This document shows positions 6,424 through 17,580 of a stretch of 64,000 nucleotides of DNA, in pieces; position 1 is the first letter of the stretch, and each line of letters opens with the position of its first letter. The notes beneath the pieces were generated by a model, which did not search any database, had not been told where the DNA came from, and saw only the letters and a program-made list of their open reading frames with translations. Source of the stretch: Salpingoeca rosetta (Eukaryota > Protista > Choanoflagellata). Location of the stretch: the NCBI GenBank assembly GCA_033442325.1, contig JAWQFM010000019.1, forward strand, positions 1,215,297 to 1,279,296, written 5' to 3'. A program made the translations under genes and the position numbers.

Positions 6424-9400
6424 ATGACAATGGCGGGCGCAATCCGACGACACCGCTTTCAGCGGCACAGGGCAGCAGTCCTGTTCACCCTCGTGAGCGT
6501 GCTCGGCCTTCTCCACAACACACCCTCGGCAAGTGCCTGGCTCAACTCCCTGGACGGTGCCCTGACCTTCTCCTGCAGTGCTGGCCAGGGAATCAGCACG
6601 ATGAAGTCGTACCACACCAACGACAAGGAGGATCGTCAGTGGGACTTTGGCTGTTCACCCGTCTCCACTGGTGATGCAGGCAGTGGTACCTGGTCTGGAT
6701 ACGTCAACTCGTACGACGGCGACATCGACTACACCTGCGGCTCAAACCAATGTGAGTGTTTCATTATGTGCGTGCGTGTGCGTGTGTGCATGCGTGTGTG
6801 TGCGTGCGTGTGCGTGTGTGCATGCGCGTGTGTGTGTGTGCGCGTGTGCGCGTGTGCATGCATGTGAGTGAGTGGAAGAGCGAGCGTGTGCGGTTTGAGC
6901 GTCAATGCACCCTCATCAAGACTTGCTCTGCGGCTGGGGTTGTTCTTCACCAGACATCACTGGGCTGTCCAGCGAACACAGCAACTCAAACGAAGATAGA
7001 ATCTGGAAGGTCAAGTGCGCGAGCGTGAACAACGCCAAACTGATTGCTTGTCGCACGCACGCCGGGTACATCAATGACTACGACGACTCCATGAACTACG
7101 AGAGTGGCGATCGCATTCTCGTGGGAATCTTCGCCACGCACGACAATAGCAAGGAGGATCGACGCTTCAAGCCAAAGACTTGCCAGGTGCGCGTTGGTGA
7201 CGTGTGTCGCTCTGCATTGTGTGGTCTGCTTTCGTGTTCTGTTTCATTGTGCTCATGTGCGTTTGTTCCTTGACATGGCATTGCTTTGCATTCTGCTGTC
7301 ACCTTTCCCGCACTCTGTTGTGTTGTTGTGCGTGCCACTTACGGGCCACAATTGCATTATCACATATGATGATGACAGGTGGAGTGCAACCGGGATACCG
7401 GCTACCGCCTCAAGGACGGCCGCGAGTGTGAACGTACGCTCAACCGTCGCTCTCTCCGCGTGCATGCGTGTGTGCGTGTGTGTGTGTGTGCGTGTGTGTG
7501 TGTGCGTGTGTGTGTGTGTGCGTGTGTGTGTGTGTATGTGTGTGTGTGTGCGCGTGTGTGTGTGTGTATGTGTTTGTGTGTGTGTGCGTGCGTGTGTGCG
7601 CGCGTGTGTGTGTGTNNNNNNNNNNNNNNNNNNNNNNNNNNNNNNNNNNNNNNNNNNNNNNNNNNNNNNNNNNNNNNNNNNNNNNNNNNNNNNNNNNNNN
7701 NNNNNNNNNNNNNNNNNNNNNNNNNNNNNNNNNNNNNNNNNNNNNNNNNNNNNNNNNNNNNNNNNNNNNNNNNNNNNNNNNNNNNNNNNNNNNNNNNNNN
7801 NNNNNNNNNNNNNNNNNNNNNNNNNNNNNNNNNNNNNNNNNNNNNNNNNNNNNNNNNNNNNNNNNNNNNNNNNNNNNNNNNNNNNNNNNNNNNNNNNNNN
7901 NNNNNNNNNNNNNNNNNNNNNNNNNNNNNNNNNNNNNNNNNNNNNNNNNNNNNNNNNNNNNNNNNNNNNNNNNNNNNNNNNNNNNNNNNNNNNNNNNNNN
8001 NNNNNNNNNNNNNNNNNNNNNNNNNNNNNNNNNNNNNNNNNNNNNNNNNNNNNNNNNNNNNNNNNNNNNNNNNNNNNNNNNNNNNNNNNNNNNNNNNNNN
8101 NNNNNNNNNNNNNNNNNNNNNNNNNNNNNNNNNNNNNNNNNNNNNNNNNNNNNNNNNNNNNNNNNNNNNNNNNNNNNNNNNNNNNNNNNNNNNNNNNNNN
8201 NNNNNNNNNNNNNNNNNNNNNNNNNNNNNNNNNNCAACAACAACAACAACAACAACAACAACAACAACAACAACAACAACAACAACAACAACAACAACAA
8301 CAACAACAACAACAACAACAACAACAACAACAACAACAACAACAACAACAACAACAACAACAACAACAACATGCCCTGTTGCTGATGGGTTGGCTGCAAG
8401 TACACGTGTTCGCGTACAGTGTGTCTCATGTACACCTTTCTCCAACCAACAGCACATGCCAAAGTTCAACACCATCTCGACACCACCGTCACATGATCGT
8501 ACTCACGATTCTGACTCACCAAATCCCTTCATCAACACCTCCTCATGAACAGGCGACACATGCACCTACGCATCGTGCAACACGGGCTACAAGCTCAGCC
8601 TCTTTGGCAGTGAATCCCGCACGTGCGGCTGGTCCGGACTTGATCCAGGCTGGTCAGGCACAGCCAAGCAATGCGAAGGTGTGAATAGCTTTGTGCTCGC
8701 TGCTTTCTGTGTGCAACTTGCAACTTGCAGCTTGCTACTTGCTGCTCGCAACTTGTTGCTTGCTCCTTGGAATTGGGAAACGAGGCGATGTTGCGAGAAG
8801 GAGAACCCACCATGTTGTTGGTGTTCCACGCGTTCACGACACCCACATGCCGTTACCCTCACGCCTGTCTCTGTTGATCCCCGTGACCTTGAACAGACAT
8901 TGACGAGTGCGCCACTGGGCAGCACAACTGTCCTGATGGGGCCATCTGCAGCAACACCGACGGCTCGTTCACGTGCAACTGCGAGTACGGCACGCTCTCC
9001 GGCGGCGAGTGCTACGGTGCGTTTTTATATGCTTGCGTGCACGTGCGTGTATGTGTATGCGTGATTGTTAGTGTGTGTGTGCTTTGTGCAGTCGTGTATG
9101 TGTGCAAATTATTAGTGTGCATGTACTCGCGTCTCGTATATATGTGTGGGTGTTGTTGCGGATCGAACCCTCCCTTCGTCCTCACACCCTCCCCCCTACA
9201 CCCCCTATCCTCACACCAACGCAAATGACACTCACGCTTGCATGGTGTGACGCGCCTGGCTGTTTGCTCTCACCTTGCAGTTGCACCCCCTTCCAGCAGC
9301 ATGTCTGTCTACCTCACGTCTCTGTACTTCACCCTTTCTGGTGGCTGGACAAGCGAGTTCCCAAAGTACCAGGTTTGTTTGCATTGGTGCTGGTTTGGTG

Positions 9401-15400: not shown

Positions 15401-17580
15401 CCCCTCCTCCACTCCTCCGAACTCCGGTCCCCGTCCCATCCCACAACATGCGCAGCTGTTTTATCTGTCGTGGCTGAACCAAGATGGGCTTGAAGTTGTA
15501 GCCAACGGACAGGCGCTGGAGACGGCACTCATCTTTGAGGGCTTCCCAGGCAACTCGGCAAAGTACATCACCATCACCGTGAACCAGGGCCCCAACAAGT
15601 TCAAGTACGACCCAGTCGCCATTGGCTGGCGGTCGCTGTGCGAGGCCGACAGGCACCCCGACAACGGCTACATCACGGACGAGGTGACTAGCGTGGAGTA
15701 CGTGTACTTGGAGGCCGAGTTCCTGCAGCCGTGCAGCCCGGTGAAGCTTGTTGGCGAGATTGGCGAGTCTGGCGCGTTCACCCTCAACCAGGAGACGATG
15801 GAGCAGGACTACAAGCCCGGCCAGATCCGCGTCGTTGCCTTCAACCCGGACCACGCCGAGCGCACGTGGCTGGAGGACGATCGCCTGGAGAAGGTCGTCA
15901 TCGAGTTCAAGCCCGTCAACTCGTACATCTGGCTGCTGGCCCGCGACGAGAACGGCGACGCGCTGGATATCCGCAAGCGCGAGAACGAGTACGGCTACAT
16001 CACGTCATGGTGGGACGCGTCCACGCTGCTTGAGGGCGACTACCACCTCCGCATCCGCGCGCAGTGCCAGGCGTCCATCAACGAGATGCCCGATGGCATT
16101 GACGAGAAGCTGTCGTCCGTTGCGCTTGGTGTCGTTGATCGCGACCCGCCGGTCGTGTTTGGATTCCCGGAGCCCGCGGATGGCGAGTTCTTCCCTGGCG
16201 ACGAGATCTCGTTCCAGTTCAACGAGGACGTGGAGTGCCGGCAGCCGTTCATCTTCCAGGTGTCGTTGACGGTGGAGGACTACGACCGCGACTTCAACAA
16301 TAACAACATGGTGATTGTGTGCGAGGGCCGCAAGATCTCCATGTCCCTTCGCCGCGGGTTCCGCTACGACGAGGTCAACGGCCTCTCCGCCACAGTCGTC
16401 ATCGAGAACGTCAAGGACCTCAACGGCAACCAAATGGAGTTCCCGCCCGAGCACAAGTTCAAGTTCGCTGAGCTGACGCTTGAGGACGCAAGCGCATCTG
16501 TGAGCGGGTTGGAGCTTGACATTCCATTCCAGGCCGTGTATCTGGACACGGCGTCTGTCATCTACACCAACTTCACCCGCGACCTTGCGCGCGAGATTTC
16601 CGGGCTTGTTGGCGTGCCGGCCTACCGTGTGGAGATTGTGCTGGTTGAGCCAGTCGACGAGAACGACTACACGCAGGGCACGAGCGTGACGCTGAAGTTT
16701 GCGCCTGCATCAACGCAACCGCCAGCGAATCAGCGTCGGCGCAGGGCCACGGAGGACCTGAATCTCTCCGCAACGCAGCTTGCATCCCTGCTACAGGAGA
16801 AGCTTCAGAACACGACGCTTGTGGAGACGCTGCCTGTGCTATCGAGCACCAAGGCGGACGCGCAGGTGAGCGTGGAGGTTGAGCCGTCCAGCGAAGATGT
16901 GACGCAGGCAGCGGCAGCGGCGGCAGCGTCGTCATCGCTCTCCTCCTCTTCCACTTCCTCTTCTGACTCCTTCAAGATTGGTGAGTTAGTTGACCGGGCG
17001 CGGTGTGTGTGTGTGCATGTGTTTGTACTGAGTGTGTATGAGTGTGGGTGTATATGTGTATGTGTGTGTATGAGTGTGGGTGTATATGTGTATCTGAGTG
17101 TGTGTGAATGTGTTTGGGTGTGTGTGGGTATGTGTGTGCGTGTGCGTGTGCGTGCGTGTACTTGTGTATGCATGTATCTGAGTGCGTGCGTGTGTGTGTG
17201 TTGTGTGTCGTTGGTGTGCTGTTGGAAGGGGACACCGGTATGTTGTCTGCTGCTTTCTTTGTGTGTTACGCTTTTGTTCGCTCGCATGCTCACGTTCATT
17301 GCTCCCTTTGGTTGCCGCTTCCACAACAGACACGTCACTGGCCCTGAACATCACCATCGTGGCACAGCTGCTTGTCGTGCTCATCGTTCTAGCGCGAATG
17401 CACCTGTACGGGGTGAAGTCTCGGACGACAGAAGTTGACGGGTTCAGGGGCAGCGAAGCGAGCTGTGGCAGCACGGACAAGGCCAAGACGAAGACCACAA
17501 CTAACACGTGGTACAAGCCGTGGTCAAAGTCTGGCAAGGTGGAGCCGTTCACACCCGAGCCAGCAGAGTCGGCCGTGTGA
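6424..17580 (+). CDS. Very large multi-exon type I membrane protein: dermatopontin - Sushi - EGF-Ca - FN3/PAN-like - uncharacterised core - Ig/FN3-like - SEA-like - TM
   Basis: GT-AG exons splice in frame: 6424-6751, 6954-7186, 7379-7433, [gap], ~8553-8678, ~8897-9016, ~9281-9372, ~9567-9693, ~9935-10251, two small exons, ~11056-13430, ~13731-14705, ~14983-15225, ~15456-16981, ~17330-17580. Signal peptide, three EDR-W/F dermatopontin repeats, DIDEC...CSNTDGSFTC, RRRRA site, TM LALNITIVAQLLVVLIVLA, C-terminus ESAV. Confidence 0.85.
6538..7186 (+). other. Dermatopontin (DERM / amebocyte aggregation factor-type) domain
   Basis: Three repeats: WLNSLDG..FSC..GQGI..SYH.N.KEDRQWDFGC; WSGYVNSYDG.IDYTC..NQYITGLSSEH.N..EDRIWKVKC; GYINDYDD.MNY....ILVGI.A.H.N.KEDRRFK.KTC. 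Confidence 0.85.
7616..8233. other. Assembly gap inside the large membrane-protein gene
   Basis: N run flanked by (GT)n and (CAA)n. The first half of the Sushi domain is missing, so at least one exon probably lies here. Confidence 0.95.
8234..8370 (+). repeat. Intronic (CAA)n microsatellite
   Basis: Perfect CAA run abutting the gap. Confidence 0.95.

Follow-up and report, generated by a model that had tools for sequence, protein, structure and literature searches.

A giant lectin-headed surface protein of Salpingoeca rosetta with a bacterial-type core and an undescribed two-hairpin module

How a choanoflagellate gene comes to join animal-type recognition modules to a very long core of bacterial appearance, and what its product might do at the cell surface, is the question raised by a locus of Salpingoeca rosetta. 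The stretch analyzed here (hereafter the window) comprises 64,000 nucleotides of contig JAWQFM010000019.1 (assembly GCA_033442325.1, positions 1,215,297 to 1,279,296 of the forward strand; host genome 55.4 Mb), numbered from its first letter. An earlier sequence-only reading had proposed that a single spliced open reading frame at 6424-17580 encodes a membrane-tethered, lectin-tipped protein around a bacterial-looking, possibly pore-forming core. The region from 6300 to 17800 was read for splice sites and stretches free of stop codons, and 15 exons were obtained on the + strand, with every border of the GT-AG type, matching phases, and a product of 2298 aa. This product is letter for letter the deposited protein P0170, named by NCBI 'hemagglutinin/amebocyte aggregation factor [Salpingoeca rosetta]'; the single open reading frame is thereby confirmed, and the locus is therefore an annotated, uncharacterised S. 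rosetta gene. It encodes a giant lectin-headed type I surface protein. About half of the protein derives from, or has counterparts in, giant secreted surface proteins of Bacteroidota-type bacteria, and this half contains an undescribed module.

Bacterial kinship of the core

The core motifs quoted in the earlier reading (QDPPGG, LGDPD..DVFDV, SGQSSCPHE, and DRDPPVVFG) were all present and recurred family-wide. The bacterial relatives emerged once a region search with a full-length paralogue admitted proteins of 1300-4000 aa: residues 1185-1745 of a full-length paralogue found a 'LamG domain-containing protein' of Portibacter lacus (P0181) and similar proteins. The initial bacterial searches, which had come back blank, were a false negative; 185,579 genomes scanned at the DNA level for [LMT][VI][LVI][RQ]DPPGGL gave 25 pattern matches of which none was confirmed, a module profile search limited to proteins of 309-982 aa gave four fragments, and NCBIfam returned nothing on the eukaryotic core. 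Starting from the P. lacus protein, at least 410 clusters were retrieved, with proteins of 1400-3200 aa from Bacteroidota (Saprospiraceae, Lewinellaceae, Cytophagales), Chlorobi, Ignavibacteriae, Calditrichaeota, and Marinimicrobia. In the majority, a sorting tail (Por_Secre_tail) of the type IX secretion system (T9SS), CarboxypepD_reg, Big_5, LamG/pentraxin, or TSP3 was present, and they were named 'LamG domain-containing protein', 'T9SS type A sorting domain-containing protein', or '3-coathanger stack domain-containing protein'.

Hidden Markov models (HMMs) of the eukaryotic family ran colinearly along the bacterial proteins, matching the N-terminal part of the core in 89 of 122, the hairpin module in all 122, and the Ig/Big_5 part in 120; the profile of the SEA part matched none of the 122. 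An hhalign comparison of the eukaryotic with the bacterial module gave a probability of 100% (E 2.6e-58, 439 columns), and BLASTP of window exons 14 and 13 against a protein of a 4.7-Mb bacterial contig gave E values of 1e-18 and 2e-9, respectively. These profile and alignment comparisons support homology and colinearity of about 1100-1300 aa of the core with giant T9SS cargo of Bacteroidota-type bacteria, and the bacterial look of the core noted earlier thus reflects kinship. A tree of 61 modules placed a single branch between the eukaryotic and the bacterial sequences (Shimodaira–Hasegawa-like approximate likelihood ratio test, SH-aLRT, 97-100), so a single transfer between bacteria and eukaryotes, in either direction, would fit.

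The cargo of the Fibrobacterota–Chlorobi–Bacteroidota (FCB) bacteria, exemplified by the P. lacus protein and by a '3-coathanger stack domain-containing protein' of Arcticibacterium (P0216), has the same domain order as the core of the window protein, and the motifs of its module (RDPPGG, GGx, DDDxGDxFSVDV, GxSSCPxE) match those of the window module. It also carries a lectin-type LamG/pentraxin domain on the same chain and is tethered C-terminally to the surface of the producer. In contrast to the window protein, the bacterial proteins lack most of a helical insert in the module, bear LamG, TSP3, or FlgD_ig domains instead of dermatopontin, EGF, and Sushi modules, and end in a T9SS sorting domain, whereas the window protein ends in an SEA-like domain, a transmembrane (TM) helix, and a cytoplasmic tail. 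The window protein has no Por_Secre_tail, and positions of the C-terminal profile past ~340 matched no bacterial protein. The window protein is a chimera composed of a bacterial-type core and eukaryotic N-terminal heads, with the SEA-like domain, TM helix, and tail taking the place of the T9SS tail. In the closest living relatives of animals, animal-type modules (dermatopontin, EGF, Sushi-like, SEA) were added to more than 1000 aa of bacterial T9SS-type core, a cross-domain gene construction whose product has multiplied to 14 or more copies with heads that change fast.

The bacterial genome contexts of the giant gene contained no functional partner. A small LytTR gene was situated directly 5' of the giant gene in three cases from Portibacter lacus and Arcticibacterium (L026:8739-9146, L028:9651-9998, and 19475-19912), LytTR pairs were found near a Y_Y_Y/HisKA_3 sensor, and LytTR was fused in three family proteins; two other genomes were without this arrangement.

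The two-hairpin module

The core holds an undescribed domain of ~430 aa that features two long, amphipathic, glycine-tipped beta-hairpins and is here called the two-hairpin module. In the window protein it covers aa ~1213-1670 (13163-15114, the end of exon 11 with exons 12 and 13) and follows the N-terminal part of the conserved core (11546-13048), in which CarboxypepD_reg/transthyretin-like and further beta-sandwich domains gave weak Pfam matches. No Pfam, NCBIfam, or PDB family was matched by the module, which is marked by the motifs DPPGG, TS..AG..SD.FLVP, F.GGGS, LGD.D..D.F.V, and G.SSCPHE. Because the module of the window copy is spread over three exons, its structure was modelled with AlphaFold 2 (AF2) on a 97-99% identical paralogue, using 29 sequences and reaching a mean predicted local distance difference test (pLDDT) score of 78.8.

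The first hairpin of the model (strands 65-107 and 113-157; 13223-13802) spans intron 11 and carries a Cys-framed, Gly-rich tip, C.GLGA..C, while the second (strands 385-420 and 423-458; 14490-14988) spans intron 12 and ends in the tip FGVG. Between them, according to the DSSP assignment of the model, lies a helical insert formed by an acidic loop and coiled helices (model residues 220-372; 13989-14453). An invariant RDPPGG precedes hairpin 1 and F.GGGS precedes hairpin 2, each forming a hinge, and across the family the tips take the form C.G[LF]G[AV]..C in hairpin 1 and FG[IV]G or GGSG in hairpin 2. The strands, 36-43 residues long, alternate hydrophobic and polar residues in both hairpins. 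Hairpin 1 measured 111-117 aa in 25 of 29 homologues and was longer in the other four, and hairpin 2 measured 84-91 aa in 26 of 29. The helical insert, of variable length in eukaryotes (87-230 aa), was almost missing in bacteria, where the whole module has 412-477 aa. Located 3' of hairpin 2, a GDxDxGD loop is followed by G.SSCPHE; in its letters this loop resembles the DxDxDG type of calcium site.

Among the matches listed by Foldseek and VIA, no significant fold match was found for the two-hairpin module. A shape search of the ESM-Atlas returned Bacteroidota hypothetical proteins with template modelling (TM) scores of 0.41 and 0.40, which are taken to be members of the same bacterial core family, and the nearest language-model neighbours of exon 12 were unnamed Bacteroidota clusters (0.94). 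This unnamed domain family, which numbers at least 410 clusters in bacteria and over 200 in eukaryotes and has no solved relative, offers a good target for structure determination.

Architecture of the surface protein and its possible roles

The head begins in exon 1 (6424-6751) with the start codon and a signal peptide of 38 aa (aa 1-38, 6424-6537), recognized by reading from a basic n-region, the hydrophobic core AAVLFTLVSVLGLL, and an AxA-type site ending in SASA/W. It is followed by a dermatopontin domain (6544-7186), of which exon 1 contains the first and exon 2 (6954-7186) the second part. Pfam PF14704 (DERM) scored 71.0 and 88.0 bits on the two exons (E 1.7e-19 and 1e-24; cut-off 28.3), and the unsplit domain of a paralogue scored 156 bits. 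Exon 3 (7379-7433) encodes a short Cys-rich piece, VECNRDTGYRLKDGRECE, that also occurs in the paralogues. Exon 4 (8553-8678) encodes the latter half of a Sushi/CCP-like module, read from its cysteines and the pattern GY..L..G...C..W, and exon 5 (8897-9016) a calcium-binding EGF domain that starts with DIDEC (D-x-D-E-C) and matched EGF_CA (PF07645) with 43.7 bits (E 3.2e-11; cut-off 27). Exons 6 to 10 (9281-9372, 9567-9692, 9935-10250, 10540-10590, and 10734-10814) form an FN3-like region, in which the fn3 profile reached E 0.009 in a paralogue; the first part of this region is kept across the eukaryotic family (residues ~330-480 of P0001, PTSG_07019). The large exon 11 (11055-13429) opens with two PAN/apple-like modules (11114-11506), to which PAN_4, PAN_2, PAN_3, and PAN_1 aligned at E 0.01-0.1, below cut-off; they constitute an insertion particular to the S. 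rosetta group and are missing in most homologues. The exon continues with the N-terminal part of the core and the start of the two-hairpin module, which extends through exon 12 (13731-14705) and ends in exon 13 (14983-15225). Of the head and stalk modules named in the sequence-only reading, the signal peptide, dermatopontin domain, and calcium-binding EGF domain are thus well founded, whereas the Sushi, FN3, and PAN-like assignments find weak support, Pfam Sushi giving no match in the window protein, where only the second half of that module has been sequenced.

Exon 14 (15456-16980) closes the ectodomain. Its predicted structure (35 homologues, pLDDT 89) contained a beta-rich stretch at residues 1-90 followed by an FN3/Ig-like domain at residues 91-230, and its top Foldseek matches were cadherin-23 EC25-MAD28 and protocadherin-15 EC9-MAD12. 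In window coordinates, the FN3/Ig-like domain and a Big_5/CopC-like Ig domain (DRDPPVVFG...FNE) occupy 15726-16475, and an SEA-like juxtamembrane domain occupies 16479-16892. The last third of the core is therefore Ig-, FN3-, and Big_5-like, as had been envisaged in the alternative that the whole core might be plain tandem Ig domains, while the middle module is built otherwise. The SEA-like domain adopts the membrane-adjacent alpha/beta sandwich fold typical of SEA domains, with RRRR (16734-16745) situated in the beta3-alpha2 loop, where about one third of the homologues likewise have a basic motif (RRRR, RRLRR, or GRRL). Its nearest counterparts are the SEA domains of MUC16 and TMPRSS6, the membrane-adjacent domains (MAD) of cadherin-23 and protocadherin-15, and the Notch heterodimerization domain (HD) with its furin S1 site. 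Exon 15 (17330-17580) encodes the TM helix (17338-17406) and a cytoplasmic tail of 56 aa terminating in ESAV (17566-17577), both read from sequence, before the stop codon at 17578-17580. The SEA-like domain, TM helix, and PDZ-type tail of the earlier reading accordingly stand.

We favour, with a confidence slightly above even, a lectin-headed adhesion or recognition receptor with an SEA-type cleavable and sheddable anchor, because such a protein would fit the architecture, a multigene family whose heads diverge, and bacterial relatives that resemble adhesins. The lectin-type head, sitting at the tip of a long beta-sandwich stalk, would bind a glycan or matrix ligand on bacteria, on the substrate, or on another cell. 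On its way through the secretory pathway, the SEA-like domain could be cut in its RRRR loop by a furin-type protease; as in mucins and Notch, the ectodomain would then be held non-covalently and could come off under force. The ESAV tail could dock to a PDZ scaffold. The likeliest roles of the two-hairpin module would be subunit pairing or a conformational switch. Several observations weigh against the receptor. The SEA autoproteolysis motif GSVVV (G/SVVV, between beta2 and beta3) is not in the sequence and Pfam SEA gave no match for the window copy, which sets it apart from mucin SEA domains and the Notch HD; cleavage at RRRR is putative. The PDZ-type tail is not kept in the closest paralogue, and head exons 4-7 were barely expressed, with an RNA depth of 0.2-5x in two runs. 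Moreover, the constraint on the module (DPPGG/GGG hinges, hairpin lengths, and Gly tips kept from bacteria to protists) exceeds what a passive stalk needs, and its weak similarities all point toward barrel-forming proteins and beta-pore-formers.

In other readings, the hairpins act on a membrane or on each other. As a lectin-guided beta-pore-former, the idea of the earlier reading, which we consider unlikely, the protein would bind a target cell through its head, the ectodomain would oligomerize, the two Gly-hinged hairpins of each subunit would form a beta-barrel in the target membrane, and cleavage in the SEA loop would release the assembly. Such a role would suit the two alternating-pattern hairpins with Gly-rich hydrophobic tips and a GG motif before each, which are kept in eukaryotes and bacteria; however, the alternation typical of aerolysin-type insertion hairpins, although present and conserved, is not specific to pore-formers, amphipathic strands being equally normal in sandwiches and shafts, and the distal parts of the hairpins were modelled with a pLDDT of only 44-76. 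After the Bacteroidota clusters, the language-model neighbours of exon 12 were aerolysin, ETX/MTX2, and monalysin (0.87-0.89). Foldseek listed secretins, aerolysin and lysenin pores, Cry23, and LSL for the module model, all with TM scores below 0.12; the aerolysin/lysenin pores, Cry23, and LSL had E values of 0.004-0.03 and no VIA Z among the top rows. When the whole PDB was searched with the profile of bacterial hairpin 2, the pore-forming domain of CEL-III was the sole match, and a marginal one (E 0.02). No pore-former family was matched in Pfam or NCBIfam, including PF01117 and PF03318 (aerolysin, ETX-MTX2), and 32 bacterial modules searched against Pfam at E values up to 5 gave scattered single matches only (KdgM, OmpW, and CEL_III_C at E 0.38). 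The comparison of the core with aerolysin, MACPF/cholesterol-dependent cytolysin (CDC), and anthrax protective antigen (PA) folds suggested in the sequence-only reading thus yielded no significant match: MACPF had no Pfam match, no MACPF/CDC chain appeared among the listed Foldseek and VIA matches, and its signature was not noticed, and likewise there was neither a Binary_toxB Pfam match nor a PA chain among the listed matches. S. rosetta does possess a proven lectin-aerolysin toxin, SaroL-1, composed of a beta-trefoil and an aerolysin domain (PMC9468336), and this toxin, CEL-III, and LSL share with the window protein a lectin head combined with an amphipathic, Gly/Ser/Thr-rich hairpin module. 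Compared with these lectin-tipped pore-formers, however, the window protein has two hairpins per chain rather than one, with the module placed within a chain of more than 2000 aa. In bacteria and eukaryotes alike, this mid-chain module belongs to a protein anchored to its own cell. The release by cleavage envisaged for the pore-former would be as in perforin-2, and the proposed tethering resembles that of TM-tethered perforin-2/MPEG1, but the window protein has no MACPF signature. The broader proposal that the module is a new barrel-forming device of FCB bacteria and protists, which would equip the choanoflagellate with a set of lectin-addressed pore-formers tethered to its surface and directed at prey bacteria, appears equally doubtful. 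In this proposal, a bacterivore would have captured the core of a bacterial weapon or adhesin and re-armed it with animal-type recognition modules. Prey killing, as envisaged in the earlier reading, is likewise hypothetical. A membrane-active module would represent a new class of pore-former and a prey-recognition system in a bacterivore.

An oligomeric fibre, in which the hairpins of several chains form a soluble beta-barrel or sheet shaft and present a multi-headed, multivalent lectin without membrane activity, is given the same low likelihood as the pore-former. The fixed hairpin lengths are what an assembly register would require, multivalency is generally of benefit to lectin heads, and T9SS cargo making heptameric surface fibres has reportedly been described for a Saprospiraceae predator, but the bacterial profile had no sequence match to solved fibres. 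A dimer prediction for two copies of the module (residues 50-480) gave a score of 0.00 with uncertain fold and counts neither way. As an assembly or stalk device, the module would explain widespread giant adhesins of marine Bacteroidota and protists. Far less probable still is a class II-type membrane-fusion or membrane-anchoring device, although the order of elements (sandwich, C.GLGA..C excursion, sandwich, second excursion, Ig-like domain, TM helix) recalls class II proteins and Dengue E appeared at Foldseek rank 47 (E 0.043). No class II protein scored in the viral library or the PDB (TM below 0.15), the VIA matches to flavivirus E were helix-on-helix only, the bacterial homologues are secreted cargo without a TM helix, and at least 14 lectin-headed paralogues are unlike known fusogens. 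The viral fold library (BFVD) contained nothing above a TM score of 0.15 for the module, and the class II fusogen idea was therefore dropped.

Further leads were rejected. A genome scan with ETX_MTX2 (PF03318) found unrelated low-complexity loci only and no paralogue locus, and TcdB_toxin_midN (language-model score 0.76-0.84) had no match on genome scan. The 'Cake' designer-propeller matches of the bacterial profile were due to one 24-residue motif and not to fold kinship, and the T9SS fibres of the grappling hook (ixotrophy) were set aside as relatives, with no PDB sequence match behind them.

Paralogues, assembly gap, expression, and neighbouring genes

For exon 14 (45-89% identity) and likewise for exon 12, the S. 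rosetta genome contains at least 14 paralogues. Dermatopontin exons were located upstream of most of the paralogues examined, in six outright and in four others on the opposite strand, which fits the list of 10 S. rosetta dermatopontin (DPT)/Ca2+ EGF genes reported as candidates for horizontal gene transfer and read as extracellular matrix or adhesion genes by Matriano et al. 2021 (PMC7971027). The earlier impression that this architecture had not been described therefore applies to the core, which was not analyzed in that work, and not to the gene, which is annotated, or to the listed DPT/Ca-EGF set. A dermatopontin partner gene upstream of the window gene was looked for and not found.

The closest paralogue is PTSG_07019 (P0001, on C12), with a core 97-99% identical in protein; its head is ~55-60% and its TM/tail region ~35% identical by estimates made by eye from the alignment. 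A second subfamily of paralogues showed 45-56% identity to the window protein. At the DNA level, a tract of 5.8 kb (10955-16717, introns included) was 94% identical to the PTSG_07019 locus (G000:C12:1196001-1213000; L018, L019), intron 11 reaching 95% compared with 96.7% in the adjoining exons and some 300-bp windows 98-100%, while the head and TM/tail exons gave no DNA-level alignment. This mosaic of a similar core and unalignable ends suggests gene conversion, a partial duplication, or an exchange of the ends, with recognition ends diverging on either side of a common core.

When the core portion of exon 11 was used for an exhaustive HMMER search, 247 clusters were returned, and those with names were all from protists. 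They included the choanoflagellates S. rosetta, Monosiga brevicollis, S. infusionum, Choanoeca flexa, C. perplexa, and Barroeca, as well as Paulinella, the diatom Seminavis, the dinoflagellate Durusdinium, a stramenopile–alveolate–rhizarian (SAR) transcript of MMETSP, and the amoebozoan Soliformovum. The family was not seen in animals among the named matches, a minority of the clusters on which the taxon assignments are based; this apparent absence bears on surface-recognition systems lost on the animal stem. The family-conserved part corresponds to residues ~330-480 and 686-2130 of P0001. Heads varied by member, and the search for other N-terminal tips proposed earlier proved fruitful, as homologues carried DERM, JmjC/cupin with ephrin-receptor-like, F5/8 type C, or MAR sialic-acid-binding with LamG domains. 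The JmjC/cupin head was present in P0012, P0014, P0015, P0041, and P0062 (Choanoeca, Monosiga, Seminavis), which are misnamed 'Ribosomal oxygenase 2' or 'Cupin superfamily protein'; it is unusual for a surface protein to bear a JmjC-like domain as its extracellular head.

Intron 3 of the window gene contains an assembly gap (Ns, 7616-8234) with a (GT)n tract on one side and a (CAA)n tract on the other. Both the end of exon 3 and the start of exon 4 are in phase 1, and these exons therefore join in frame across the gap, as in the deposited model. In PTSG_07019, a small exon of its own adds 22 residues at this joint, and five paralogues, PTSG_07019 included, carry such an exon with the pattern [ST]C.PL.L.NG.TEG.C.G.FG. 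Nothing resembling it is encoded in the sequenced flanks of the gap in the window; therefore, 7616-8234 probably conceals an exon of ~66 nt that encodes the initial half of the Sushi-like module. Since the missing exon is phase-symmetric, the reading frame is kept with or without it. Long (GT)n/(CA)n microsatellites occur in nearly all introns (e.g., 6760-6860, 7450-7615, 9840-9928, 10290-10400, 13440-13560, and 17000-17230), and the (CAA)n run adjoining the gap extends over ~135 nt. Such intronic repeats are probably behind the gap.

Regarding expression, reads of two stranded RNA runs were aligned to 8372-14371. They contained the junctions 10250/10540, 10590/10734, and 10814/11055 and placed the RNA on the + strand. 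The majority of the core reads bore the letters of paralogues; the window copy was therefore weakly expressed in both runs, and splicing and expression of its exons 1-7 rest on few reads. Many loose read ends were observed at fixed positions in exons 11 and 12 (11351, 11391, 12141, 12837, 13839, and 13960). They fit patchy matches from transcripts of other paralogues, so short-read expression of single paralogues needs care.

Just 3' of the gene, an open reading frame at 18126-18713 (+) had a sub-threshold C2 match (E 7e-4, 20.2 bits, cut-off 22). Head-to-head with the gene on the other side lies an unrelated TM protein (964-5181, - strand; 1405-aa open reading frame) with no Pfam match. Its product combines a signal peptide with a short ectodomain rich in Ser and Pro, a TM helix, and a long tail of low complexity, and includes a stretch, HTYEFHLDG...LYYQCTNFPHMGGEV, that looks like a cupredoxin-type copper site.

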